DNA of 64,000 nt, from the sequence record NC_027402.1. The stretch is one strand, 5' to 3'. The notes under the pieces are model-generated. The model was not told where the DNA came from. It saw nothing but the letters and a program-made list of their open reading frames with translations, and made no database searches. This document shows, one piece after another, positions 5,752 to 26,813 of this stretch. A program made the position numbers and the translations under genes. Numbering within the stretch: position 1 is the first letter of the stretch; each line of letters begins with the position of its first letter.

Positions 5752-6750
5752 ATGGCTTTCACACTACGCTGGAAAAATGAAAATCCGGCAGGTTCAATTG
5801 TTAACATTTATCGGGGCACGGCTAAAATAAATACAGCCGCATTACCAGCCCCTATTGCAACTTTAAGTAATGGCGAAACGGAATGGACGGACGAAACCGT
5901 TATTCTTAACACCCGTTACTGGTATCTTTTAACAGTAACTGTTAACGGTCGTACCGTAGGTAGTCCACAAAAATCCTTTGTCATTAAAAACCGTCGTGGT
6001 GTGGGTGGCGTCGACCAGATTAACTATTCCGATACTGACGACTTGGCGTTTCTGGGGCAGTTGCCGTTCGAAGAACAGATGACCTATGACGCGTTGCCTG
6101 CAGGCTTTCGTGCATTAACAGGGATATCGGGCACGGGCACGCTAATCATGAACAAGTTTTATCGTCATGGTAAAGTTTACTACATGATGAACAACGGCGG
6201 ACGATTTAACTCTACACTTTACTCGTGGAATGACATTTATAACGCGGGGCTTGTGTACGGCGTTGATGGATTTGGCCCTGATAACGGACGTGGTGATTTG
6301 GCGGGTGTTGACCAGAGTGGGTTGTTTGAATGGCAAGGCGACACCTATCGGATGCGCCTGCTGCGCGGTTTAACCGACGGGGACGAACCGACAGTAATGA
6401 CGTTGGATGAATCGTTACGAAACGCAGACCATGATGACTTGGAATATGGTCGCTGCGAATATAACGACTTTGTTTATCCGTTCGCGGATTGCATCCCTAA
6501 CAAACAAATGCTCCCCAACTGGACTAATACCAGTCCGGCGTACATTTATGGGAGCGGTAGCGCTTACCAAGGCAAAGGTTTCTTGTGCCAGGAACGTGAT
6601 CCTGAATCGGGATTAGTTCTGGTTCGTGGGTCTGCGCCTATCGATTCAAGCACAACCAATACGTCGAAACGTAACCTCTCTCAAGTTACGTTAATTGACA
6701 GTGCTGAGAAGGTCGGTTTGTACGCATTCGTTATCGAGTTAGTGGAGTAA
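5752..6750 (+). CDS. Virion structural paralog C2
   Basis: 332 aa; colinear with C1. Confidence 0.75.
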   Translation: MAFTLRWKNENPAGSIVNIYRGTAKINTAALPAPIATLSNGETEWTDETVILNTRYWYLLTVTVNGRTVGSPQKSFVIKNRRGVGGVDQINYSDTDDLAFLGQLPFEEQMTYDALPAGFRALTGISGTGTLIMNKFYRHGKVYYMMNNGGRFNSTLYSWNDIYNAGLVYGVDGFGPDNGRGDLAGVDQSGLFEWQGDTYRMRLLRGLTDGDEPTVMTLDESLRNADHDDLEYGRCEYNDFVYPFADCIPNKQMLPNWTNTSPAYIYGSGSAYQGKGFLCQERDPESGLVLVRGSAPIDSSTTNTSKRNLSQVTLIDSAEKVGLYAFVIELVE

Positions 6751-13589: not shown

Positions 13590-13620
13590 CTTACCCACTC
13601 CCCTTACGGGAGTGGGTAAG
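13590..13620. terminator. Bidirectional terminator, TACC(C/T)ACTCCC family
   Basis: 13-bp stem CTTACCCACTCCC/GGGAGTGGGTAAG between convergent genes. Confidence 0.75.
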
Positions 13621-14238: not shown

Positions 14239-14766
14239 ATGGCAGTCATCTCTGCAAAAGACCAACTCGTCGCGCTGTTTAATGCTGCAAACAGCGGACT
14301 GTCTAGTCCGTTAACTGCTGCTGACGTTACATTCGGCGCTGTTGCTGACTATTCACCAGCTGATTCCGGAGACACACGCAACTCCAAACTTACCATCACC
14401 GCCACCGAGGAATCCGCTAACTTTACTGGCGAGAAAGAGCTGCATTATACCCGCCTCAATTCATTGAACATCATCGGTGCGAAAGCAGTGACCGCTGACC
14501 AGGCAGAATGGGATACCGATGAAGAAGTGCTTGCTTTTGTCAACGCAGATCTAATTGCTGCCGGTAAAACGGAAGATGCGTTTGCATTGTCTGAACTCAC
14601 CATTACACGCGAGGACGGCAGCAGTGGTGAGAAAATCATCACTGTTAAGGTGAAAGAAGGCCACATCAAATACCAACCTGCCAGCCTTGCGGTTTATACT
14701 GTAACACAGCCAATCGTTAAAACTGACCTGAGCACCACCAACGGTGAACTGGACGGATTCGTTTAA
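14239..14766 (+). CDS. Small virion structural protein (YTRLN domain, TNGELDGF end)
   Basis: 175 aa acidic protein sharing N- and C-terminal motifs with the B genes; AAGGA SD. Confidence 0.7.
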   Translation: MAVISAKDQLVALFNAANSGLSSPLTAADVTFGAVADYSPADSGDTRNSKLTITATEESANFTGEKELHYTRLNSLNIIGAKAVTADQAEWDTDEEVLAFVNADLIAAGKTEDAFALSELTITREDGSSGEKIITVKVKEGHIKYQPASLAVYTVTQPIVKTDLSTTNGELDGFV

Positions 14767-14806: not shown

Positions 14807-14830
14807 CCTACCTCCCCGAAGGGAGGTAGG
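14807..14830. terminator. Bidirectional terminator ending the radical SAM/tail-fibre operon
   Basis: CCTACCTCCC-CGAA-GGGAGGTAGG with an A tract before and a T tract after. Confidence 0.75.
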
Positions 14831-14847: not shown

Positions 14848-15519
14848 TTACATGCCGAGAGATTCGGACAATGTTTTTAATCCAGTGTAATCGCGCTTTT
14901 CAGCTAACTCACGGATTTGGCGTTTGTTATCTGCCATTGCTGAGTGCAACACCTGGTCACGTGCAACAATAGCGCCCAACAACGCTTTACATTGGTCTAC
15001 TGTAAACGGACTGTGCTTAGTATTCAGCGTATCGAGCCAGTATTCTGGTGCGGTATCTGCCTGAATGTATTGACCGAGGATGGTACGCGACGATTCATCG
15101 GCTTGAAAGTGACTACCTTCAAACTCGATATAACCATGACGCTCATCTTCGTACCGGTGGTCAAGTTCCAACAGCATCTTCTGCACGTCTTCGTAAATGT
15201 AACGTGCGGTAGATTTCAGATTCCCGCGAATTTCGTCGAGGTCAATCTCCAGCACATTAGCAATGAACTCTTTCGTGCGTTTCAATGTGAAGTTAGCTTC
15301 AATCTCCGACATCTCATACAGCTTCATGCGTGCCAGGGCTTCTTTATCAGACATCCCTTCGATGAGATGATAATGGAGCAGAGCGCAAAAGCCTGTACGG
15401 CCCTGATCCTGCGCACCGATTCGTTCCATGAAATTACCGTGACGATCAATCGGCAAATCACGCTGGAAATAACGGGCGCGGATCTCTTCGTTCGTTAAGC
15501 TTTTGTCAGTAACAGACAT
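14848..15519 (-). CDS. Protein with C-terminal DUF4376-like (tail-fibre assembly-associated) domain
   Basis: GYIEFEGSHFQADESSR...WLDTLN....FTVDQCKALLGAI resembles DUF4376 as I recall it. Confidence 0.55.
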   Translation of the reverse strand: MSVTDKSLTNEEIRARYFQRDLPIDRHGNFMERIGAQDQGRTGFCALLHYHLIEGMSDKEALARMKLYEMSEIEANFTLKRTKEFIANVLEIDLDEIRGNLKSTARYIYEDVQKMLLELDHRYEDERHGYIEFEGSHFQADESSRTILGQYIQADTAPEYWLDTLNTKHSPFTVDQCKALLGAIVARDQVLHSAMADNKRQIRELAEKRDYTGLKTLSESLGM

Positions 15520-16061
15520 TCGTCCTCCTCAATCAGGCCAAGTTCTAACAACAAACCGAAGTCCAGCATCTGGAAGTCCTGATCGAGGTTACCGGCCCAC
15601 AACAGAGAAATGTTGTGTTGCTCTTCTTCTTCCAACTGCGGGAGCAGGTGTTCTTCGAAGATTTGACGCTCTGTGTAATAAGCGTCAACCGGGTTATTGG
15701 AGCGTAAGTTACGAATACGCATCCGCGGGAAAGACAAGCCCAAAGCCACTAAACTTTCAGGACTGGCTTCATCAATAGAGTGACGTAGCAGTTCGATTTT
15801 GTGGCGTGGGTATGCAAGCAGTCGCTTCTCAAAGCCAGGGTTGCGCTTTTCGATTTCCGCGACAGACTCGTGTCCTTTCTCAACGCAGTAGACCGGGATC
15901 ATCACATTCAGCCCGTATTTAATCAACAGGCTTTGGATTTCATCAGTGAAGTCTTCCCCTGCCACAATTGCGTGCACATTGTACAGCTTGCTTTTGCGCA
16001 GGAAGCGATCGACCAAGTGCAGTTTACGCTTCGTAAAATTGTGAATCAGTATTGACTTCAT
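15495..16061 (-). CDS. Hypothetical protein in radical SAM operon (188 aa)
   Basis: Start moved to MKSILIH (GGAG SD); overlaps both neighbours. Confidence 0.6.
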   Translation of the reverse strand: MKSILIHNFTKRKLHLVDRFLRKSKLYNVHAIVAGEDFTDEIQSLLIKYGLNVMIPVYCVEKGHESVAEIEKRNPGFEKRLLAYPRHKIELLRHSIDEASPESLVALGLSFPRMRIRNLRSNNPVDAYYTERQIFEEHLLPQLEEEEQHNISLLWAGNLDQDFQMLDFGLLLELGLIEEDECLLLTKA

Positions 16062-17352
16062 TCTGGGCTCCGTTTTGTAATTTTTCTGCTTCAGCACGTT
16101 GGCGTACACAACGTGAACAATAGCACATGGATTTATCATGCAAATCTGATGCGCGGGTCGTACCAGTTTTCTGATACCAATATTCCGCCGCCATCAGCTT
16201 CGCAGTAGTCCAACCACACTGACGACGCTCGGCGTGATACGCTTTACGGTCTTCCAGTGTACCTTCACCGTTTTCGTACGATGCTGCTGCGCAGCTACCG
16301 CAGCTGTGTTTCATCGGACACCCTAAACAGGTTTCTGGGTAGTTGGTGTACTGCGTTTGAATCTCTTCTAACAGCTTACCACCGTCCAGGCTCACAAACT
16401 CACGACCGACCAGTTCTGCTACAGCAGAACGGGAAGTTACCGTGGACATGAAACGGTTACAACCGTAAATCTTGCGATCAAAGCCGAGACAGGTCATGTG
16501 CGTCAACGTACCGCAGTACGGTTTCAGGCGTTCTGGGTCGAGACGAACAGAGTCGTCATGTAAGAGTTTGTCACGCCAATCCGGGTCCCAAGTTGCCATA
16601 AAGTTCAGGCCATCCGGGATGATGTGTGTAATCGTGTTACGCGGGTTGGTGTGCAGACCCTTCTCAATCCAGTAGTCCATCACGTCCATCATCTGGTTCG
16701 CGATATCCAACGCCATATGGCGCGGCAGGATATCTTCGTACGTTACGTTACCAGAAATGGTACCACCGCCGGACATGTCAATTAACGATTTCATGCTGGC
16801 GGCATAGTGCGGCAATGTATCGATCGTAAACGTCGCCTTTACGCCCAGTTCAGCGATGCCAACACTCTTCAGATAATTGTAACCGCGTACCGCAGCTTCG
16901 TACGACCCTTCACGCGTCGTGGTAAAGATACGATATTTGTCATGGACTTCAGGTAAACCATCGATGGAGACCCCAATAGACAGTTTGTCTTTCCAGCGCT
17001 CGATAATTTCTTTGTTCAGCGGACGGTCCAGAAGTGTACCGTTCGTGGAGATACTGAACATATACGGGCGATTGTGTTCTGCGCATAACTTCTCTGCGGT
17101 TTCAAAGGCCGCCAAAAGAAGTTTAGGCTGCATGAACGGCTCACCACCGATGATATCGATGATGACTTCAACGTTCGGGATATCTTTATCACGCTCGAAA
17201 CAAGCGTGGATAAAATCAATCACGTCTGCTACTTTGTTGTTACGAGGATATTTACGCTCGTAGCAGTATTCGCAGTCCAGGTTACATGACAGGTTAGTCA
17301 CAACCTGATACGTGCGTGGTGTGTACTGGATTTGCTGTTCGCTGTTACTCAT
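16024..17352 (-). CDS. Radical SAM/SPASM peptide maturase, CXXX-repeat-target type (TIGR04115-like)
   Basis: CNLDCEYC (CX3CX2C), GGEP, STNGTLL, SIDG; SPASM-type YCG..C....IYGC...CLGCPMKHSCGSC...C. Confidence 0.9.
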   Translation of the reverse strand: MSNSEQQIQYTPRTYQVVTNLSCNLDCEYCYERKYPRNNKVADVIDFIHACFERDKDIPNVEVIIDIIGGEPFMQPKLLLAAFETAEKLCAEHNRPYMFSISTNGTLLDRPLNKEIIERWKDKLSIGVSIDGLPEVHDKYRIFTTTREGSYEAAVRGYNYLKSVGIAELGVKATFTIDTLPHYAASMKSLIDMSGGGTISGNVTYEDILPRHMALDIANQMMDVMDYWIEKGLHTNPRNTITHIIPDGLNFMATWDPDWRDKLLHDDSVRLDPERLKPYCGTLTHMTCLGFDRKIYGCNRFMSTVTSRSAVAELVGREFVSLDGGKLLEEIQTQYTNYPETCLGCPMKHSCGSCAAASYENGEGTLEDRKAYHAERRQCGWTTAKLMAAEYWYQKTGTTRASDLHDKSMCYCSRCVRQRAEAEKLQNGAQNEVNTDSQFYEA

Positions 17353-18259
17353 TGTTCGCCGCCCGTTTACGCTTAGCAGAAATTACACGGTTGATGTAGT
17401 TATACGCATCAACGCCGATAGAACGCGCCAGGCGATTACAGCCGACTTCCAATATCTCTGGCGCGTTCTGAATTTGCTCCTGCGTACCGTCGGCGTTAAG
17501 CCACAGCACTTCACTGCACGTGTTGCACTCGGTATCGAACATTTTACTGATTGCAAGCCCACATTCAGAATCGTTCTGCATGTTAAGGCGTTCGATATTG
17601 TCGAGTATTTTCCAATACCCGTACATGAAGTTCATGACGTGGTCCGGCGATAACGGTTTCGGCATCATCGCATCAAACAACAACGACACACCACCTGGAC
17701 GGTAATGATAGATTGCTCGGTGCAGCTCGATGAAATCTTCGTACCAGCGTTTATCACCTAACTGGTCACGCGTCATCACACCCCAGGTGTAATAGTTGTC
17801 CAGCTCGTACAGCACTTCCAGCGCTTCATGATTACCACCGTTTACAAAGTTCATAAACGGACGTTCCGACTTCTTGTAGCCGTCAATGGACACAAAGATA
17901 AGGTCGAACTGTTTCAGCAACGGCAGATGTGATTTACGCATCTTTAAACCGTTGGTGTACATGTGATGACGGAGGTTCGGATGAGACTCCTTCAACTCGT
18001 TCACGAAGTCTTCAATCTTGCGCTGCGCTAACAGCGGCTCACCACCCGTCCAATGAATCTCACCGATATCCGGATTCTTCTCTAAAATCGAGAGAATCTC
18101 TTCACGTTGAAACTCACGAGAAGTATCTTCTCTATCCATGTAATAAGCCCCTCCACAGAAGCTACAGTCTAAGTTACACTTAGAAGTTGCGACAACCGAC
18201 AGAATTGACGGTTTGTCGTACAGTTCAGACGAGATCCTGGATTCTACTTGATCTGTCAT
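17345..18259 (-). CDS. Second, shorter radical SAM enzyme
   Basis: CNLDCSFC, WTGGEPLL, YTNG, VSIDG; only CNTC...C at the C-terminus. Confidence 0.88.
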   Translation of the reverse strand: MTDQVESRISSELYDKPSILSVVATSKCNLDCSFCGGAYYMDREDTSREFQREEILSILEKNPDIGEIHWTGGEPLLAQRKIEDFVNELKESHPNLRHHMYTNGLKMRKSHLPLLKQFDLIFVSIDGYKKSERPFMNFVNGGNHEALEVLYELDNYYTWGVMTRDQLGDKRWYEDFIELHRAIYHYRPGGVSLLFDAMMPKPLSPDHVMNFMYGYWKILDNIERLNMQNDSECGLAISKMFDTECNTCSEVLWLNADGTQEQIQNAPEILEVGCNRLARSIGVDAYNYINRVISAKRKRAANNE

Positions 18260-18280
18260 TGCAGGTTGCTCCAGTATTTT

Positions 18281-19168
18281 TTAAATATAATCAATGGCGA
18301 ATAAAGGATCTTCGTCTACATTAGCGCCAGGCACCAGTAACATCGGGTCGTGATAGGCAGCTAAAATTTTGTTCAAGTCGGCATGTCTTTCGTTCAAGCG
18401 TTTCAAATCGGCCAACGTTACCGAACGACTACGAATCTCAGAAACAGCTTCTGCTTCTTCTTTCGTTAAATCCACCTTCGTTAAGAGGAAGCTTACCAGC
18501 TTACTCAAATCCGCTTCTGTCGCCGGGTAGTCCCCATATCGGGTTTGAACCAGGTGTTGCATCCACGGCTTACGAATGCGTTTGGTGATTTCAAAATCGT
18601 CAGTCAACGCATACCAGACAGAACGCTTTTTATCCCACACGAACTTATAGCTATACGCCATCATGTCCGCTAAACGGGTGATGCCGAGTTCTTTATATCC
18701 CTCGATATCGATGTACGGTTCGGTGTCGAAATACGTTTCCGTATCGGCAGGTACCAGTACAAAGTAGTAAGGGAACGAGCCCAGATAGTCCGGACTCCAC
18801 CAACGGCGCGCCATCGGTTTTGCTTCGAGTTCGTCAAACGGTGTAAACATCAGTTCTAAATCGACACTGTTGTTCAGAATCCCTTCACTGAAGAAATACT
18901 TACCGTCAACCAACACGCCGCGAGAGTTACCATCGCCGTTAAAGATAACGATGGCCTCTGCAACCATATCACGGATCTTAAACGTATTTTCTACGGTGTA
19001 GTTCTTCTTGTCGGTCAAGAAGCGACCACGAACCTTTGGCCACTCACCAGGAATCTGTGCAATCAGTCTGACTTTGTCAGCGAGGTGTGCACGCACCGAA
19101 TCTGGGGAAGATAGATGCAGCGGGTGGTTGAATGTGGTTTTATACGCAAGATGCAAATCGTTTTTCAT
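18281..19168 (-). CDS. Hypothetical protein between the CXXX peptides and the radical SAM genes
   Basis: 295 aa ORF with GGAG SD; no family recognised. Confidence 0.6.
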   Translation of the reverse strand: MKNDLHLAYKTTFNHPLHLSSPDSVRAHLADKVRLIAQIPGEWPKVRGRFLTDKKNYTVENTFKIRDMVAEAIVIFNGDGNSRGVLVDGKYFFSEGILNNSVDLELMFTPFDELEAKPMARRWWSPDYLGSFPYYFVLVPADTETYFDTEPYIDIEGYKELGITRLADMMAYSYKFVWDKKRSVWYALTDDFEITKRIRKPWMQHLVQTRYGDYPATEADLSKLVSFLLTKVDLTKEEAEAVSEIRSRSVTLADLKRLNERHADLNKILAAYHDPMLLVPGANVDEDPLFAIDYI

Positions 19169-19190
19169 TTAATACTCCGAACGTTTTCTG

Positions 19191-19397
19191 TTATCGATTC
19201 CCCGCTCCACGGCTACAGCTTCCGCTGCAGGACCAGCTACACCCACCATTACAGTTATAGTGAGAAAGCGGTAAGCCAGCCAGGTTATTTGTGGTCGACA
19301 CGGTGCCCTGGTTAGCGATATAGTTGTTTGCCTGTGCGGTTGTAATGTAACCTTCTGCCGTAACGAGACGGTTTCGAATAGTCTTGAGACTGATCAC
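19191..19397 (-). CDS. CXXX-repeat precursor-like peptide 3 (68 aa, 4 Cys)
   Basis: GGAGG SD and GTG start; 48-aa leader ISLKTIRNRL..., core CNGGCSWSCSGSCSRGAGNR. Confidence 0.8.
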   Translation of the reverse strand: MISLKTIRNRLVTAEGYITTAQANNYIANQGTVSTTNNLAGLPLSHYNCNGGCSWSCSGSCSRGAGNR

Positions 19398-19412
19398 ATA
19401 AGCCTCCGTCAG

Positions 19413-19817
19413 TTAGGAGTTAGGACCTGAACAACCACCAGAGCACGCACCTGAGCAGTTTGCGGAGCAGGATTTACCACAACCCCCAGAACAGCTGCCT
19501 GTGCACGTGCCGCTACAACCACCAGAGCACGAAGAGCTACAGCCCGTGCAGCTGCTGCTACAGCCTGATACACAGTTTGCCGAACAAGTCGACCCACAAC
19601 CGCCCGTAGCAGACCCAGTACATCCGCCAGAACAACTCGAGCAACTAAAAGAGCATGTTCCACCACAGTCATAGTGCGAACGACCTTGACCTGCGAACAA
19701 GTCAGCGTTATTCGTAGCTTTATTGCGAATGTAGTTTTGCACATTCGTGGTATTCTTTAGAGCGTTTGCATCGATCGTGTTTAATCGGTTATTCAGTTCT
19801 TTTAATCCAATTGCCAT
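19413..19817 (-). CDS. CXXX-repeat precursor-like peptide 2 (134 aa, 20 Cys)
   Basis: 50-aa leader, then a Cys/Ser/Gly core starting CGGTCSFSC. Confidence 0.88.
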   Translation of the reverse strand: MAIGLKELNNRLNTIDANALKNTTNVQNYIRNKATNNADLFAGQGRSHYDCGGTCSFSCSSCSGGCTGSATGGCGSTCSANCVSGCSSSCTGCSSSCSGGCSGTCTGSCSGGCGKSCSANCSGACSGGCSGPNS

Positions 19818-19827
19818 TTAATCCCCC

Positions 19828-20220
19828 TTAGCGACCTGAACAGCCGCCGGAGCAGGCCCCGGAACAACTGGAAGAACATGAGCCACCGCAACCACCTGTG
19901 CAGTTACCGGTACAGCTACTACTGCAACCACCAGAACAACCAGAGCAACCAGAACAGTTACCGCCACACGTCGAAGAACAGCTACCGATACAAGAAGCAG
20001 AACAGCTTCCTGAACAGCTCGAACAGCCATGCGAGCAACCGTTAGAGCACGTCCAAGAACATGTCCCGCCGCAATCTAGCTGTGCTTTCGTCCAACCCCC
20101 AAATCGGTCTGCCGCGTTATGGGCTTTAGAGGCCACTTGCGCGTCGATACGGGGGCCTGTCGCCATGTTAGCTTCGACTATCTGGACGCGGTTTCTGACG
20201 TCTTTAATAGATATCGCCAT
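19828..20220 (-). CDS. CXXX-repeat precursor-like peptide 1 (130 aa, 21 Cys)
   Basis: AGGAAG SD; 49-aa leader, then a Cys/Ser/Gly core starting CGGTCSWTC. Confidence 0.88.
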   Translation of the reverse strand: MAISIKDVRNRVQIVEANMATGPRIDAQVASKAHNAADRFGGWTKAQLDCGGTCSWTCSNGCSHGCSSCSGSCSASCIGSCSSTCGGNCSGCSGCSGGCSSSCTGNCTGGCGGSCSSSCSGACSGGCSGR

Positions 20221-20241
20221 TACGCTTCCTTAAAAAGTAGA

Positions 20242-20278
20242 ACGAGCGGACTATGTCCATAAACATAGTCCGGCTCGT
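20242..20278 (-). promoter_or_regulatory. Long bulged hairpin immediately upstream of the CXXX peptide genes
   Basis: - strand ACGAGC-C-GGACTATGT-TTATGG-ACATAGTCC-GCTCGT, then TCTACTTTTT; contains TATG twice. Confidence 0.55.
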
Positions 20279-20285
20279 AAACAAG

Positions 20286-21488
20286 TTACTTAGTACCCGC
20301 TTCAGCTTGAACATCGTCGCGCGAGGTGAGGTTGTTGTTGACGTGAACAGCAGCCTGCACAACACCGCCATACTGTTTATGGAGGTAATTCGGGTGTGGG
20401 TTATCCGCAGCCGCATGGTTCGCCAGATTCTGGTTTGCCTGCGAAATTGCGTTGGTGTTGTTTACAACCTGAGTTTTAAGACTGTTGATTTGTCCTTGCA
20501 GGTTATCAATTTGCTGTTGGAAGTCTTTGCCCTGATTCTCAAGATCCGTGACGCGCTGATTCGTTTCATTCAGTGCAGACTGAAGATCGTTAACCTTCTT
20601 CTGTAATTGCAACACCAGAGAATTAAGGTTAGCTAATGCTAACGACATTTTCTGGTAATTTTGAGCAACTACATTAAGCTGGTCGTTCCACGCGGCTAAC
20701 GAAGCCACAACTGCATCGATGCGTTGCCCCAACGCCGTGTCTGCTGCTCTTAAGTCGCCGATATCTTTGATGGTGGCGTCAATGGCAGTCTGTACACTTT
20801 GAATCAAAGCACGAATCTCCGTCTCCGTCAGGCCATTAACCTGATGAATGTCGAGATTGTGTACGTTACCTTCGGCGTTGATGTGGGTATTTAAGGCATC
20901 GAGGAAGTCGTTTTTCAGACCGTCCAGAATACCTTTAATTTCTTCCAGCTGTACTGCAGAGCCGGAGTTAATCGCATCTTTAATCCCCGCGAGTACGGTA
21001 ATGATATACTCAAAACCGTAGATATCGCCAAGGTCTTTATACGTCGGTGCGGACGGGAACGTATCGGGTACGTTCCGAAGATCCTTGAAGTCCACCACAC
21101 GGTCTTCAATTTTCAAAGATGCAATCGCTTGTCGGATGCCTTCGACGTTCGCGGACTGAAAACCACCAACGACTTGCGCAGAGACTTCGATATCAGTAGG
21201 AATGGCCGAGTTAGTTACCACCACACCCATGACCACTTCGCGGTTCTTGGTCATTTTCTGATATGCAGTATGTGCAAAAATCAGCTCGTAGTCTGTACCG
21301 CGTTTGTACGGGTAGACACCTGGTTTATTCGCAGCCGCCAAGCGGAAGGTATCCGCGTAGAAAGCTCCGTCAGGAAATGCAAAAGCCCGGTTAACTTTAC
21401 CAGAACCTAACGTAATACGCCGCGTAACGGCGTTCGACGTTAATGTCCCGGTAAGGTCAAGCGGGTACTGATAAATGATTTCGGCCAT
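20286..21488 (-). CDS. Coiled-coil tail-fibre-like protein (400 aa)
   Basis: Start moved to MAEII (AAGGAG SD); YPLDLTG N-terminus like the large fibres, long heptad region, HAAADNPHPNY fibre motif. Confidence 0.7.
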   Translation of the reverse strand: MAEIIYQYPLDLTGTLTSNAVTRRITLGSGKVNRAFAFPDGAFYADTFRLAAANKPGVYPYKRGTDYELIFAHTAYQKMTKNREVVMGVVVTNSAIPTDIEVSAQVVGGFQSANVEGIRQAIASLKIEDRVVDFKDLRNVPDTFPSAPTYKDLGDIYGFEYIITVLAGIKDAINSGSAVQLEEIKGILDGLKNDFLDALNTHINAEGNVHNLDIHQVNGLTETEIRALIQSVQTAIDATIKDIGDLRAADTALGQRIDAVVASLAAWNDQLNVVAQNYQKMSLALANLNSLVLQLQKKVNDLQSALNETNQRVTDLENQGKDFQQQIDNLQGQINSLKTQVVNNTNAISQANQNLANHAAADNPHPNYLHKQYGGVVQAAVHVNNNLTSRDDVQAEAGTK

Positions 21489-21535: not shown

Positions 21536-24500
21536 TTAGGTACGGAACATAAGATTGACCTGGATAACATCAGGCTGTTGACGTCCTCTCTCGTTCACCC
21601 AATCATGCGCAATCGTTAACGTAAGATTATCGCCATCCCACGACATGATCGGCGGTGGGAATAAACCCTGAGCACCTGTGGTAACAACCGGGATTGCACC
21701 TGCCACATTCGTAAACGTATAGCTACGACTGTTCAGAACAACCGGTGTGCCGTGGGTCTCTCCCGGATGTGGTAAGATTTGAATCTTACTATCCGAAAGA
21801 TCGGTGGTGATTGGTAGTCCCCCAGCGTCCGTGAAAAGCCAAGAGCAAATATGCTGTTTAGCTGTTTCGAGCGCTGAAGAACTTACCGACGCGACAAACG
21901 TAAAGGTGCACGGCACGCCTGCTGGCAGAGAGTGCTGTTTGTGGTGCACGGTATGTGGTGACGGCAATAACACTTCTGGGTTTTCGTCAATGTTAACATC
22001 CGTACCTTCCGCTTCGACGTTGTAGAAAAAGCCATCCACCGCCTCCCATGGGGCAACGTGGACATTAAAGGTCGTTTCTACTCCCGGTGTACCTGGGACG
22101 ACGAATTTACTTTGCACCACCACCATCAGGTTTGTTGAAGTCGGAGCGAAAGCGGGCGTTGGAATACCTACCCACTCCATTCCCAACGATGCCGCTTCAC
22201 CGTTCTCATCGGCCGTTACCGTCGCAATTGTTGTAGGATGTTTCCAAAACGCCCCCGACTTGTTTGCCTGAGTAAACGCCGGCAAAGTTTTCAAGCCTTC
22301 GAAACGTTTGGACACCATCGCTTTACCGCGACGCTGTGCGTCAGATACGGTATAAAGCAACTGACTATCTAGATAGCCTTTCGTAGCATCGACTGACAAA
22401 GGACCCATCGCTTCTTTACGCAATGGTGCCAGTCTGCCCGTTGCTGCATCCCTTCCCACTTCCACATCATGCTTATTCTCAACCGCCGCATGTTCCAACA
22501 GCTGTTTTACCGCCCCCAATCGCTTAGCATGGTCGACGTTAGTCTCGACGACTCGCGACGAGCCCGTTTTAACATACCCGATGTATAGTTCCGTTTCAGT
22601 GTCTGGATGTTGAACCACGTCCATTACGTACTTCGGTGTACCATTTTCTACCTTAGCGTGCAGGTAGAATGTCCGGTTCTGATGGTTTGTTGGAAATGCT
22701 TCGCTGAGGTCAATATACCACGTAGGCAGCTTATAAGTGCTCGAGCCGAAACGCAGGTTAACTTCCTCAGTCACATATACCAGCCAACCTTCGGCTGTTT
22801 CCACACCAGCAATGACGACCGATTCAGTCGGGCCACTAAAATTAGGAGCCGTAACAAAATCTCTCGACGACGTTGCGATACCACCACAGTAGACGTAGTT
22901 GAGAGATGAGTTGTGCAGCATCACCTGATCACGATGAGCCAGATAAGCTGGGCTGACTGGAGTGTGTGACGGTGCCATACGCCCAACGCCGTGTGGAGCA
23001 GAAGAACGCGTCCAGGTACCATTAGACAGCGTAAGACCAACAGCGTAGTTAAGCGCACCCAAGTCGCCAATCTGCTGCAAAGTTAACGTGTGTGGAAGAT
23101 ACAACCCGAACTGCGTACCATCTACCGACACCAAGGTAGGTTGTCCCGGCCGGCGTGTTTTTCCTCCCGTTATCTCACCCAACGTAGCGTACTTCAAGCC
23201 ATAGTCGAGGTTGTTATAGAAGTCAAACAATGTCAATATCGCCGCGGGGAATGTTACCTGCCCGTTGCTGATTGTTGGTTTCAGTGTAAAGTAGTAGATA
23301 TCCAACACGTTAACATTGTTCACAGTACGTGTACATGCTACTTGTGCTAATGTGAGCGGTGTGGCTGTACCGATACCGATGAACCAAACGGAGAACAGTG
23401 CCTTTCCTGCGTTATTTGCGGCAAGGATATATTCCGAAGCATAACCATTCGCAGCGCCTGCCGGTGCTCCGTCGATGATCATCTGCTTCATCTTATTCCA
23501 TTCAGCTTGTGACAGCGTCAATCGATCGGCATGAATCGTGAAAGTGCCGGAAACGTTGTGGTAAGGGAATGTTTCTGGTCCTGTGCAATACCAGCCGTTT
23601 AACTCTGTACCAGGCGACGCCGGTGTAACAATGTGGCACATCTGCGACAGATTCTCATACGTGATAGAATCTACTAGACGACGATTGTTAGTTGGGCCAT
23701 ACCCCGCCTTACCTGAGTAAGTGGTGTTCGGATCAAACTCAACTTCAATTGCCAAGCGGGAACGCGGCTGTGACAACCAGATAAGTCTGGAATCCGCTCC
23801 CAGAGTCAGCGGATACGCCATACCCAGCTCGTAGATAGAACCACGTCCCTGGTTTAACGTTACCACACTAAACCTTCTGGCAGTGAAGTTGTAGTCGCAC
23901 GACAGGTACTCGTACCAACTCACACCGTCATCTAACGTTGTAATCACGACAATTGGCATTAGGTCACGATCGCCGGCATGTCCTTGCGAAACGATATATT
24001 TGTCTTGCGATGTTGCAAAGGTTTGGTTATTAGCTTGACCTTCGCCCCACTTCCGGCTCGGAATCCCAATCTCAGCACCACCGTTATAACGAACCGCGGT
24101 AAGATCAGCCACAATAGGGAATCGATCGGCACCTTCCAGCGTTACCGTCATTGAACTGCAATCAACAACAAAGCTTGACACCCATTGTTTAAAGTTAATA
24201 GTTTGCCCTGTAGTAGAAGCAAACCAGACTGTTGGCGTTAAACCAACACGAAAGTTCAGCCCATCCACAGCAATCGCGTGATTACATTCCGGACCATGTA
24301 CAAAGTTGGTTGCATTGTTCCACTTCGCTAACGCGTCTGCGTAGATCTGTGTAACTGGTGCTGGGAGCGCATCGGAAGGTGCACGTTTCTGTCCCTGTCG
24401 CAGATAAACGTTTTCACCCGACGTTAATATCCCGCCTGTTAACGCATCCGCCACAAACGTGTTGCTACCACCCGGATTAAGTTCGTTGAGTGCGATGCTA

Positions 24501-26719
24501 CGCATACTCACGAAATAGTTACCGGAGGTAAGCACCGTACGCAACAGGTAGACACGTTCATTACAAACAATCAAATCGTCTGTAGAAGCGTTTGGAGCCC
24601 ACGGTGCTGTCGTTACTGTGCCCGCACCATTACCGTTCTTGTAATCACCCAACACCACTTTAACAACACGATGATGTTTTGCATGGTCAATCGTCCCATC
24701 GAAGATGACCAAGTAGTACGCACCGTCACTGCCTAAGCAGATCATTGCATCTGTACCGGTAATCACAATAGCAACCAGATTCACCCCAGGATACGCCGAC
24801 ATTCCAGCGGGTCGATAACGTACGGACGTCTGCTGCATATTTTCCAGCGTATTGCTTGGCGACACATCAGCATAGGCGTAATAGATAGCCCAGTCACCAG
24901 GTGGGTTCCCGTTAGAACCGTTACGGAGCGAGTAAACCTTACCAGACTCGTAACGCGCCAAACCTTTCTGCCAGGTTTGGTTTTTGGTATACCCTTCGTA
25001 GTTCCCCTGGACAGGTATAGGCAAGAAGTTATTGTTGCCGTACGATGATCCGCCGACAGTCCACGCCGGTAATAACGTAGCAATCTTGTCATTCAGCATG
25101 TCAATCTTCTGTTCAAGCAAGAAGCCTTGACGCGAAGTGACCATCTTATCCGAGGTAGTGTCGATTGCATCCCACAGTTTAGCCAAACCTGTAACAGACG
25201 TGGATGCGTACGGCACGTTATCGAGATCGGCAATGGTGTGGGTGTGCGTTGTAAGCGCTTTGCCTGATAGCACGGTGCGCAACGCATTAGTAACCGGTTT
25301 CTCCAGCGGTCCGGTATTGTTCATCTTCTCAATACCGAAATCTGCCGCGGTTAAGGTCAGATGCATCTGCCCGTTTGAATCTAATACAAACCCTTTACCG
25401 TTGACTGTATACGTGTCGTCCACATATCCGTCGAGTTTGTTCTTCAAGTCAGTAACAGCTTTTTGGGAAATCGCTGTGGACGCTGCAGCGGACGCCGAAA
25501 GGTTAGTAATCGCAAACAAACCCTGCACAGTTGTGGTTGCTGCAGGCAGCTCAGCATTCATGTAAAGTTTGTTTGTTTCTTTACCAGAGCCGTAAATCTT
25601 CAACGTGTCGCTGGACTTGAAGTAGGCGTTTGCTGGAAGTATCTTCACCGAGGTCAAGTACATCTTAACCATATCCGGCGTAACGAGATACACGCTGTTA
25701 TACACAGGTGCAAGCACACCTGCATCATAAGCGCCCCACTTGTCACCTGCTTTACCCGAGTGAACCCAAAGCGTGTTCAGACCAGCACTGAACTCCGTAG
25801 CGATACCCGGTTCGTTGTTATCCTGGTCAGCTTTTAATACCAGCGGTTTTGTCGAGGTGATGATGAACTTCTCACCCTTCATGCTGATAACGTGACCAGA
25901 CGTTGTTTGGAACGTAATCGCGTCGTTATTCAGAACACGCATACGGCCCAGTAAATCACCCAGGGTATTATCCAGAAGCATGTCAACGTGTTTCTGTTGG
26001 ATGCCGCTGGTAGACATTAACGTCACTAGCTCTGCCAGGGTACGTCCGAATGCCTTAGTCGCATCTACGGCTTTGCCGAGTACCGGGAGAGCGCCAATGT
26101 CACCGCAGGTGTAACCATGTGCATTTTTAATCAGATGGTGTTGATACATTTCGTCATCAAACACCTTTTTACCGTTCTGATAAATCAAATCGGTAACTTC
26201 CGCAAAAGCCTCATCCAGTTCGTGGGCACGTTCTAAAATACCCAGACGGATATCTTCCAACGCCTTTACGATTTCATCGCGAAGAATCGCTTCTTCGAGG
26301 TCTTTTGGCGGGTCGATTGGCGAGATAATCGGCGGATATTTCATCAGCTCAGACCAATCGCAGTTACGCGGGTCTTTCATATCTGTCTTAACCAGATACT
26401 TGCCGATTTCAGAAGCAGGGATGCGATACTGTCGATCAACCGACAGTAACTCGTATTCTACCTCTGTGGCGTTCAGCAGCATTATGCTGCCGTATATTGC
26501 ATCGTTCTCAGCCTCGGCTAATTCCTGGAAGTAATGTCCTAAGAAATAATCGAGACCTTCTATTAACTTGCGTTTGGTTCCGGTTGTTTTATCGGTAACG
26601 GTTAACGTTAACCCGATGCGATAGAACGGTGCTTCGACGGGAATGACCGCCGAATAACGGTTCGGGTAAGTAGCGGTACTGAGCGTACCGTTAAACTGCG
26701 CCGCATCTTCTCTCGGCAT
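21536..26719 (-). CDS. Giant tail-fibre protein (about 1727 aa; phiKZ gp145/gp146-like)
   Basis: Start moved to MPRED (AGGAG SD); APFY, PAATTTVQGL and PYASTSVTGL fibre repeats, HTH motif. Confidence 0.75.
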   Translation of the reverse strand: MPREDAAQFNGTLSTATYPNRYSAVIPVEAPFYRIGLTLTVTDKTTGTKRKLIEGLDYFLGHYFQELAEAENDAIYGSIMLLNATEVEYELLSVDRQYRIPASEIGKYLVKTDMKDPRNCDWSELMKYPPIISPIDPPKDLEEAILRDEIVKALEDIRLGILERAHELDEAFAEVTDLIYQNGKKVFDDEMYQHHLIKNAHGYTCGDIGALPVLGKAVDATKAFGRTLAELVTLMSTSGIQQKHVDMLLDNTLGDLLGRMRVLNNDAITFQTTSGHVISMKGEKFIITSTKPLVLKADQDNNEPGIATEFSAGLNTLWVHSGKAGDKWGAYDAGVLAPVYNSVYLVTPDMVKMYLTSVKILPANAYFKSSDTLKIYGSGKETNKLYMNAELPAATTTVQGLFAITNLSASAAASTAISQKAVTDLKNKLDGYVDDTYTVNGKGFVLDSNGQMHLTLTAADFGIEKMNNTGPLEKPVTNALRTVLSGKALTTHTHTIADLDNVPYASTSVTGLAKLWDAIDTTSDKMVTSRQGFLLEQKIDMLNDKIATLLPAWTVGGSSYGNNNFLPIPVQGNYEGYTKNQTWQKGLARYESGKVYSLRNGSNGNPPGDWAIYYAYADVSPSNTLENMQQTSVRYRPAGMSAYPGVNLVAIVITGTDAMICLGSDGAYYLVIFDGTIDHAKHHRVVKVVLGDYKNGNGAGTVTTAPWAPNASTDDLIVCNERVYLLRTVLTSGNYFVSMRSIALNELNPGGSNTFVADALTGGILTSGENVYLRQGQKRAPSDALPAPVTQIYADALAKWNNATNFVHGPECNHAIAVDGLNFRVGLTPTVWFASTTGQTINFKQWVSSFVVDCSSMTVTLEGADRFPIVADLTAVRYNGGAEIGIPSRKWGEGQANNQTFATSQDKYIVSQGHAGDRDLMPIVVITTLDDGVSWYEYLSCDYNFTARRFSVVTLNQGRGSIYELGMAYPLTLGADSRLIWLSQPRSRLAIEVEFDPNTTYSGKAGYGPTNNRRLVDSITYENLSQMCHIVTPASPGTELNGWYCTGPETFPYHNVSGTFTIHADRLTLSQAEWNKMKQMIIDGAPAGAANGYASEYILAANNAGKALFSVWFIGIGTATPLTLAQVACTRTVNNVNVLDIYYFTLKPTISNGQVTFPAAILTLFDFYNNLDYGLKYATLGEITGGKTRRPGQPTLVSVDGTQFGLYLPHTLTLQQIGDLGALNYAVGLTLSNGTWTRSSAPHGVGRMAPSHTPVSPAYLAHRDQVMLHNSSLNYVYCGGIATSSRDFVTAPNFSGPTESVVIAGVETAEGWLVYVTEEVNLRFGSSTYKLPTWYIDLSEAFPTNHQNRTFYLHAKVENGTPKYVMDVVQHPDTETELYIGYVKTGSSRVVETNVDHAKRLGAVKQLLEHAAVENKHDVEVGRDAATGRLAPLRKEAMGPLSVDATKGYLDSQLLYTVSDAQRRGKAMVSKRFEGLKTLPAFTQANKSGAFWKHPTTIATVTADENGEAASLGMEWVGIPTPAFAPTSTNLMVVVQSKFVVPGTPGVETTFNVHVAPWEAVDGFFYNVEAEGTDVNIDENPEVLLPSPHTVHHKQHSLPAGVPCTFTFVASVSSSALETAKQHICSWLFTDAGGLPITTDLSDSKIQILPHPGETHGTPVVLNSRSYTFTNVAGAIPVVTTGAQGLFPPPIMSWDGDNLTLTIAHDWVNERGRQQPDVIQVNLMFRT

Positions 26720-26751: not shown

Positions 26752-26813
26752 ACCGCCCTCCCAATAACGGAAGGGCGGTTTACCTACGGACTACCCGCCC
26801 GTAGGCAGTCCGT
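26752..26813 (-). other. Tandem intergenic hairpins between tail-fibre genes
   Basis: 26786-26813 is a bulged stem with a TACG loop; 26752-26779 is an 11-bp stem including one G-U pair. Confidence 0.5.

Follow-up and report, generated by a model that had tools for sequence, protein, structure and literature searches.

The window analysed here is a 64,000-nucleotide (nt) stretch of record NC_027402.1. It corresponds, with 100% identity, to bases 124001-188000 of SPN3US, a 240-kb phiKZ-related jumbo myophage of the genus Seoulvirus (records JN641803 and NC_027402); the record coordinate is the window coordinate plus 124000. Between positions 14,848 and 21,488 the minus strand carries the fibre gene gp167, three small open reading frames (ORFs) in which a cysteine recurs at every fourth residue (CXXX repeat, or Cys ladder), two genes for radical S-adenosylmethionine (SAM) enzymes, gp164 and gp163, and the accessory genes gp165, gp162 and gp161. 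We call the three ladder ORFs pepA, pepB and pepC (130, 134 and 68 aa). We propose, with a probability of about 0.6, that this cassette matures a structural part of the tail fibre and not a secreted peptide, the product being a distal fibre module crosslinked by radical SAM chemistry. By analogy with related enzymes, the crosslinks are probably thioethers.

Cysteine ladders and radical SAM enzymes of SPN3US

The ladder ORFs follow one another on the minus strand, pepA at 19828..20220, pepB at 19413..19817 and pepC at 19191..19397. The pepA product consists of an N-terminal segment of about 49 residues, a junction and a ladder of 21 Cys; that of pepB has 20 Cys, and pepC is a short paralogue with the same N-terminal segment and junction and 4 Cys. 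Taken together, 36 of their 42 successive Cys-Cys spacings are exactly 4 and five are 3. Ser or Thr follows the Cys in 75% of the repeats, Gly comes next in 56%, and the cores contain neither Asp nor Glu. Ordinary tryptic sites are present in the N-terminal segments. Such runs exceed chance: six-frame translation of the window gave no run of at least six Cys at spacing 4 outside the cassette. All three proteins belong to PHROG 6085, a family with no assigned function (phrog_6085, E 7.5e-41 for pepA, 3e-41 for pepB and 2.7e-24 for pepC).

The choice of reading frame matters here, because a repeat with a 12-nt period leaves several frames open and the databases took another one. We compared SPN3US with SPAsTU and pEa_SNUABM_29, both at about 80% DNA identity. 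In the Cys frame, differences fall on the third codon position in 69 of 91 cases (SPAsTU) and 60 of 82 (pEa_SNUABM_29) for pepA, 73/96 and 80/123 for pepB, and 27/35 and 33/45 for pepC. For pepA against SPAsTU the ratio of synonymous to non-synonymous differences is 68:23 in the Cys frame, versus 14:76 and 10:80 in the other frames, and each of the three ORFs is preceded by its own Shine-Dalgarno site. These codon-position statistics and ribosome-binding sites establish the Cys frame as the coding frame. A first-pass annotation made from the letters of the window alone had singled out three peptides with a Cys at every fourth residue, and these are real genes.

Neither SPN3US record annotates pepA-C. 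The sole gene annotated between gp165 and gp167 is gp166 (19409-19744), an Ala/Val-rich ORF read from pepB in the +1 frame; it has no Shine-Dalgarno site and shows a synonymous to non-synonymous ratio of 12:84. The gp166 annotation is a wrong-frame mis-call. In pEa_SNUABM_29, plus-strand ORFs are annotated over the ladder genes. A collection of 15 billion predicted proteins contains pepC, as a 'hypothetical protein', but neither pepA nor pepB in its exact sequence. The trio of two long and one short peptide is kept in all Seoulvirus relatives among the loci that we compared (numbered with L below) and in L172 (L003, L004, L009-L012, L172).

The product of gp163 (16024..17352, minus strand, 442 aa) belongs to the radical SAM superfamily, with a PF04055 score of 55.6 bits (cut-off 29.5) and a CX3CX2C motif at C23/C27/C30. 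Seven further Cys (280, 298, 342, 345, 351, 354 and 379) are invariant among 19 homologues, down to 32% identity; this is the set of seven C-terminal Cys that defines SPASM enzymes with two auxiliary 4Fe-4S clusters. The Pfam SPASM model itself gave no match to gp163 at E <= 0.1, and the model of the peptide maturase PapB aligns through that region. The best family is the CXXX-repeat maturase family TIGR04115, at 125.6 bits, below the cut-off of 350, followed by the PapB model at 113.6 bits over residues 22-357 (cut-off 340). On the TIGR04115 scale the enzymes of loci L058 and L020 reach 474 and 293.6 bits. The top family matches of gp163 are all peptide maturases, and its nearest solved structure is that of the thioether-forming SCIFF maturase CteB (5WGG, E 3e-10). 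The alignment begins at residue 106 of CteB and gp163 starts at its radical SAM core; gp163 therefore lacks an N-terminal recognition domain. Upstream of it by 1.8-2.9 kb, on the same strand, lie pepA-C as adjacent CXXX targets. From these sequence features gp163 is likely to be the crosslinking enzyme.

The first-pass annotation had seen two radical SAM enzymes here and linked them to SPASM maturases of the CXXX-repeat type; for gp163, motif, invariant Cys, best family and nearest structure all agree with this. The profile searches that it suggested came out divided: TIGR04115 is indeed the best family, but the score of gp163 stays under the cut-off (125.6 against 350), as do those of pepA, pepB and pepC with the target-repeat model TIGR04114 (19.6, 17.1 and 13.7 bits, cut-off 20).

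The second enzyme, gp164 (17345..18259, minus strand, 304 aa), is a small radical SAM protein (PF04055, 58.8 bits). Its CX3CX2C motif occupies residues 28-35 (C28/C32/C35); it also has a GGE motif and, towards the C-terminus, an invariant Cys at 248 and another at 274, with a further Cys at 245. The pattern suggests that it possibly carries one auxiliary cluster. Its family matches are spread over MoaA, QueE, viperin and NrdG-type enzymes at similar weak scores. The database coding sequence of gp164 starts at Met41 (18139) and so omits the CX3CX2C motif; SPAsTU and pEa_SNUABM_29 annotate the long form.

Enzyme-ladder pairing and ladders fused to tail-fibre proteins

To follow the pairing, 80 viral and 80 genomic loci were retrieved with an alignment of gp163 homologues and every ORF was scanned for Cys ladders. 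The homologues range from 100% to about 47% identity in jumbo-phage-sized contigs, and from 32 to 39% in other contexts. A ladder is present in 71 of the 80 viral loci, always on the strand of the enzyme and in 63 cases just upstream of it. It was also found in 11 of the 20 best genomic loci. As a negative control, genomic loci holding merely generic radical SAM relatives gave a single ladder in 60. The co-occurrence of enzyme and CXXX protein, which the first-pass annotation knew from bacteria and wished to see surveyed by synteny in related phages, where enzymes found without such peptides were to count against it, is thus borne out.

The ladder proteins of these loci are mostly not small peptides. 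Their median length is 268 aa, with at least 200 aa in 52 of 71, and the ladder ends at most 30 residues from the C-terminus in 50 of 71. Several of them are recognisable fibre or tail proteins. In L005, a Deferribacter prophage, and in the related contig L173, two small genes come after lambda-type tail genes (K and J, in L173 also L). The next gene encodes a protein of 302 aa and 258 aa, respectively, with typical fibre repeats and a C-terminal CXXX ladder; it is followed by a homologue of gp165 and by two or three genes for radical SAM enzymes. A 213-kb phage contig (L007/L008) encodes a 568-aa fibre-like protein whose C-terminus is recorded as the Pfam CXXX-target repeat PF27846, with two radical SAM genes after it. 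In their N-terminal parts, the ladder proteins from three loci have PHROG matches: to tail fibres for L013 (E 2e-40) and L015 (E 1.4e-31), and to tail proteins for L016 (E 2e-10 to a minor tail protein). The L013 protein ends in a CXXX run, and the C-terminal parts of those of L015 and L016 match phrog_6085, the family of pepA-C itself. A region homologous to pepA-C thus lies inside proteins that match tail-fibre families. A Pfam search of the fused fibres gave no matches, in a copy of Pfam that lacked PF27846.

The fused proteins also bear on the N-terminal part of pepA-C. The junction found ahead of the first Cys of pepA-C also stands where the CXXX run begins in the 258-600-aa proteins of the closer group of relatives, as seen by comparing pepA (...NAADRFGGWTKAQLDCGGTCSWTCS) with L016 (...DAETLNGQAPDYYRCANGCSWTCS) and L173 (...NASKLAGQTSGYYRCSGCSWTCT). 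Because the same junction opens the ladder in the fused proteins, what the first-pass annotation called a shared leader is, on this sequence comparison, better read as the piece that joins fibre shaft to ladder than as a cleavable segment. HMMER searches with the N-terminal segment alone gave 11 matches among 1.8 billion representative proteins. The long ones (P0197, P0199 and P0201) aligned through several repeated stretches; P0197 and P0199 proved to be unrelated repeat proteins.

A bona fide member of the CXXX class lies in the same kind of surroundings. In L058, genes for a tape-measure-like protein, for tail proteins and for a baseplate wedge protein lead up to that of a fibre protein (349 aa, gp167 PHROG, E 1e-50). 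After it come the TIGR04115 enzyme of 474 bits, a ladder protein of 240 aa, a tail protein and a reverse transcriptase; the arrangement in L020 is similar. Fibre genes of the gp167 family adjoin enzyme and CXXX gene in both L006 and L058, which are distant phages. An ORF related to the L058 fibre occurs in 36 of the 80 viral loci and, in the cases checked, ends just before the ladder ORF. A profile search seeded with gp167 missed the group B fibres, which were reached by the search seeded with the L058 fibre.

The extended gene set of SPN3US is likewise found elsewhere. Partners of the gp164 type stand beside gp163 relatives in L005, L006, L171, L172 and L173, with two copies in each of the last two, and relatives of gp165, gp164 and gp163 accompany ladder proteins in L005, L171, L172 and L173, a lambda-like prophage included. 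L006 has a rearranged cassette (gp163, gp162, a ladder protein of 129 aa, gp164 and a member of the gp167 family) that adjoins Peptidase_S74 fibre genes.

Other features of these loci were recorded in passing. Some relatives have three radical SAM genes instead of two (L171 928-2112, L172 1868-2830, L173 7306-8992), with two gp164 paralogues in L172. In L171, a phage contig, a 73-aa gene with the Acb2/Tad1 hairpin domain, of the anti-defence sponge family, lies at 5877-6098, just upstream of two ladder peptides. At 620-3412 of L085 a 931-aa protein, with no PHROG or Pfam family match, ends in an acidic variant of the ladder (Cys-Glu-Thr-x and Cys-Gln-Thr-x units) and is followed by a gp163-like enzyme. 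In metagenome-assembled genomes (MAGs) of Margulisiibacteriota/Termititenax (L089-L092), gp163 relatives have as neighbours ladder proteins that are 498-672 aa long and hold 60-112 Cys in their CXXX runs. The reverse transcriptase genes of L020 (12604-13881) and L058 (13798-15024) are placed beside a tail protein, a few kb further downstream than the CXXX and radical SAM genes, which suggests diversity-generating retroelements in the same fibre modules.

The cassette and its neighbours in SPN3US

The order on the minus strand is gp168, gp167, pepA, pepB, pepC, gp165, gp164, gp163, gp162 and gp161. From pepA to gp161 the genes overlap or are separated by 10-22 nt; the gap between gp167 and pepA is 65 nt. 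A bidirectional intrinsic terminator at 14807..14830, with a 10-bp stem of which 7 pairs are G-C and T tracts on each strand, ends both the minus-strand run and the plus-strand gene gp160. The co-oriented, tightly packed run closed by a terminator that the first-pass annotation described is therefore present with all its genes. Two further strong hairpin terminators were noted in the surroundings, a bidirectional one with a 13-bp stem at 13590-13620, just below the 3' end of the minus-strand gp159, and a minus-strand one at 26752-26779, which overlaps the extended (TTG) start of the gp168 ORF.

Between gp167 and pepA the minus strand can form a terminator-like RNA hairpin followed by a U-rich tract (about 20242..20278), with a minimum free energy of -24.1 kcal/mol and a z-score of -4.5. 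The structure is kept, with differing stem sequences, in four relatives (L003, L004, L010 and L012). It could attenuate transcription or stabilise an mRNA 3' end. Since this conserved hairpin separates gp167 from the cassette, the two may not form one simple transcription unit; expression of the cassette may be lower than that of gp167, or regulated apart from it. A scan for sigma-70 promoters was uninformative, as SPN3US uses its own RNA polymerases.

The gp167 gene (20286..21488 as annotated, the ORF being open to 21524; minus strand) encodes a virion fibre protein of 400-412 aa. Its N-terminal domain belongs to the family phrog_2163 (E 5e-109) and the remainder is a long coiled coil, the C-terminal half matching coiled-coil families only. 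The protein is abundant in purified SPN3US virions, with 85 spectra, 70% coverage and an SC/M of 1.90, and is not among the head proteins (PMC5694885, Supplementary Table 1). Upstream of it, gp168 (21536..26719, minus strand) is annotated as a long tail-fibre/baseplate protein of paralog family C, of 1727-1742 aa; mass spectrometry and mutant analysis identify it as a virion and tail protein (PMC5105663, PMC5694885). An attachment domain common to gp167 and gp168 was considered and dropped, BLASTP detecting no similarity between them. While gp168-173 are present in purified virions, gp161-166 were not detected (PMC5694885, Supplementary Table 1), and in the SPN3US proteome papers gp161-gp167 appear in table rows only.

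Of the accessory proteins, gp165 (18281..19168, minus strand, 295 aa) is conserved, with homologues in matching position in L005 (E 1e-9), L171 (2e-26), L172 (1e-12) and L173 (2e-6). It has no Pfam or NCBIfam family and no PDB sequence match. Its AlphaFold2 model (pLDDT 88.3) finds no fold match in the PDB (best E 0.16), and in a viral structure library only its own orthologue. For gp162 (15495..16061, minus strand, 188 aa, phrog_7988) the AlphaFold2 model (pLDDT 89.9) predicts a beta/alpha partial barrel with no cluster motif; its fold matches, all weak (E 1e-3 to 3e-2), include TIM-barrel enzymes and the SkfB and ChlB radical SAM cores, a resemblance too weak and generic for gp162 to be kept as a radical SAM-like core. 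Homologues of gp162 directly follow the SPASM enzyme in L006, L171 and L172.

The last gene of the run, gp161 (14848..15519, minus strand, 223 aa), encodes a DUF4376 protein (PF14301, 36.9 bits, cut-off 25) with a weak match to a 'tail protein' PHROG. Among the loci compared, its homologues are restricted to L003, L004, L009-L012 and L172, and its linkage to the cassette to jumbo-phage relatives. The main text of PMC5694885 places gp161 in head paralog family B. Supplementary Table 1 of that paper does not contain gp161 and lists gp160 (18.5 kDa, plus strand, 14239-14766) as a family B head protein; the gp161 of the text is probably a numbering slip.

The 6.7-kb stretch with the cassette was found in 40 phage records, in 26 of which at least 80% of it is covered; names and listed hosts of these records include Salmonella, Escherichia, Erwinia, Cronobacter and Proteus. 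In LR535901, LR535907, LR535908 and LR535911 (SPFM1, 9, 10 and 12) the match consists of 40 short pieces that cover 37% at more than 99% identity, and here, as in several sister SPFM records, the radical SAM enzymes, gp165 and gp162 align with the SPN3US proteins over small parts only. These fragmentary matches look like trouble of assembly or sequence quality and not like biology.

Proposed mechanism, alternatives and significance

We propose that pepA, pepB and pepC are separate small distal subunits of the fibre, in which about 50 N-terminal residues end in the junction and lead into the Cys ladder. With one SAM cluster and two auxiliary clusters, gp163 would employ the 5'-deoxyadenosyl radical in linking the sulfur of every Cys to a carbon atom of a residue nearby, so that small thioether rings follow one another along the ladder. 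In related ranthipeptide systems the Cys is bonded to a residue three or four places removed; a candidate acceptor is therefore the Ser or Thr directly after the preceding Cys, which we offer as a lead only. The second enzyme, gp164, would introduce another kind of modification or handle a subset of the sites. Because gp163 has no recognition domain of its own, gp165 and gp162 may hold or present the substrate. Once stapled, the ladder would be rigid and stand up to proteases and reducing conditions, and would sit as a distal module on the coiled-coil fibre gp167, its proposed shaft or partner; in other phages the same module is the C-terminal domain of the fibre polypeptide.

Several observations weigh against this proposal. 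The placement of pepA-C in the virion is an inference: the published virion proteome was searched against an annotation that lacked them, and speaks neither for nor against their presence. The scores of gp163 lie under the curated cut-offs of both TIGR04115 and PapB. No product of any CXXX-type maturase has been published in the searchable literature, and the thioether chemistry is therefore an argument by analogy. The hairpin between gp167 and pepA hints at separate dosage or regulation. Searched alone against 1.8 billion proteins, the N-terminal segment of pepA-C finds only small peptides of the same phage group and no long fibre proteins, so that the link to fused fibres rests on the short junction and the PHROG profile match. 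Finally, the neighbours of the 667-aa CXXX protein in the Termititenax MAG L090 gave no phage family matches, and for this reason we do not claim that the system is exclusive to phages.

A true RiPP is the first alternative. In it, pepA-C would be precursors with a leader, whose crosslinked cores are freed of that leader by a host or unrecognised protease and released as peptides at lysis. Such a scheme would account for an enzyme class that is one of RiPP maturases, for three small ORFs with a conserved N-terminal segment and variable cores, and for the filing of CXXX repeats as radical SAM targets in NCBIfam. The hairpin that parts the cassette from the fibre gene and the failure to find gp161-gp166 in virions would also fit, although pepA-C themselves were missing from the database searched and their absence from the virion data is uninformative. 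It agrees poorly with the relatives, in which the homologous CXXX regions are the C-termini of 258-600-aa proteins, some of them tail-fibre proteins, the median CXXX ORF has 268 aa and the loci lie inside baseplate and fibre modules. Nor does the cassette contain a peptidase, exporter, immunity gene or recognition element. Searches with Pfam, NCBIfam and PHROGs from gp168 to gp161 found no peptidase, exporter or PqqD-like recognition element, the annotation of the flanks in the SPN3US records shows no leader peptidase or exporter, and gp165 and gp162 have no family or fold match of the RiPP recognition-element kind. The first-pass annotation had rightly recognised no exporter or leader peptidase. 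A reading of its pathway as a RiPP system that trims a leader and yields a free peptide is not supported, given the fused fibre proteins and a gp163 devoid of a recognition element. We consider a released RiPP unlikely, and equally so its action as a bacteriocin, signal or metal binder.

A second alternative, to which we give about the same small weight, is an intracellular role with no place in the virion. The ladders would be scaffolds or chaperones for the fibre, or metal or iron-sulfur binders that serve the radical SAM enzymes, and would be discarded before completion of the virion, with or without crosslinks. Assembly factors are often encoded immediately after the fibre gene in phages, metals can be bound by Cys at regular spacing, gp161 combines DUF4376 with its weak tail-protein match, and none of gp161-166 was seen in virions. 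Against this, the fused ladders belong to the fibre polypeptide itself, which is easier to reconcile with a domain that stays in place than with a helper that is shed, although some fibres do have chaperone domains that cleave themselves off; and the strict pairing with a SPASM maturase points to the ladder as a substrate. The first-pass annotation had allowed that the product might stay in the cell or in the virion; fusions and tail-module context favour the second branch.

That the radical SAM enzymes act elsewhere, on a nucleotide, a cofactor, DNA or another virion protein, with the CXXX ORFs as unrelated neighbours or non-functional repeats, is very improbable: phages do use such enzymes in nucleotide pathways and the matches of gp164 are dispersed over several families, but the co-occurrence (71/80 against 1/60), the purifying selection on the Cys frame and the uniform top matches of gp163 to peptide maturases disfavour it.

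A crosslinked fibre module, the reading that we prefer, can be set beside several known systems. The closest is the CXXX-repeat system of the databases (enzyme TIGR04115, targets TIGR04114 and TIGR04117, repeat PF27846). It shares with SPN3US a SPASM-type enzyme and a co-oriented CXXX protein with small flanking residues, and its bona fide member L058 lies in a phage tail module beside a gp167-family fibre gene. The SPN3US type differs by its second radical SAM enzyme, by gp165 and gp162 and by the distinctive junction before the repeats, whereas a single enzyme and another N-terminal domain, of about 140 aa, characterise the classical type. We found no biochemical characterisation of either type in the searchable literature.

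The ranthipeptide and SCIFF systems, PapB/freyrasin and CteB/thermocellin, resemble that of gp163 in their enzymes and in their Cys-rich repetitive substrates. The PapB substrate has repeated Cys-X3-Asp units (PMC10739248). In contrast, the cores of pepA-C have no Asp or Glu as acceptor, gp163 has no N-terminal recognition domain and scores below the family cut-offs, and the substrates are far longer here and, in relatives, are parts of fibre proteins.

A functional analogy can be drawn with the distal adhesins of the T2/S16 gp38 type, which are also small, encoded directly downstream of a fibre gene and built of short repeats rich in small residues, and which, like the ladders, are fused to the fibre in some phages and separate in others. 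Glycine-rich tip domains have been described for S16 gp38 and Pam3 gp24 (PMC9942802). Adhesins of this type need no radical SAM chemistry, whereas the ladder is Cys-based with a period of 4, and the likeness is offered as a functional one only. Covalent reinforcement of virion parts has precedents. The HK97 capsid is stabilised by an isopeptide chainmail. The fibres of cyanophage Pam3 are bound to the baseplate by disulfides (PMC9942802). Those bonds arise spontaneously or by oxidation, whereas here radical SAM enzymes of the phage would install bonds that cannot be reduced.

The pairing of enzyme and target is of an already known, computationally defined kind, captured by NCBIfam and Pfam models. 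Judged by the searchable literature, the novelty lies in the occurrence of the pair within phage tail-fibre modules, in fibres fused to a ladder and in the enlarged gene set with paired radical SAM enzymes, gp165 and gp162; that literature contains no paper on the radical SAM genes of SPN3US, on CXXX maturases or on radical SAM chemistry in tail fibres. There is a substantial chance that the cassette represents a new kind of virion maturation. We put forward more tentatively, and with somewhat more doubt than belief, the general proposition that phage radical SAM enzymes place irreducible thioether staples in the receptor-facing ends of fibres, and that the CXXX-repeat/TIGR04115 class is largely a virion-maturation system of phages and prophages.

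If the proposal is true, phage structural biology would gain a new class of post-translational modification, radical chemistry performed on a virion protein. The general proposition would add a new kind of covalent reinforcement of virus particles by enzymes, shared by jumbo myophages and lambda-like prophages. The proposal would further account for the failure of gene finders and proteomics to notice pepA-C, two of which are absent in their exact sequences from 15 billion predicted proteins and one of which is hidden under a gene annotated in the wrong frame. For the mining of genomes for RiPPs it is a caution, in that a radical SAM maturase may have as its substrate a domain of a large structural protein and not a natural-product precursor. 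On the general proposition the CXXX-repeat/TIGR04115 class, so far filed as a bacterial RiPP-like system, would belong largely to virion maturation; on the proposal itself this maturase family would acquire both a biological role and a tractable model in SPN3US, for which amber mutants and virion proteomes exist.

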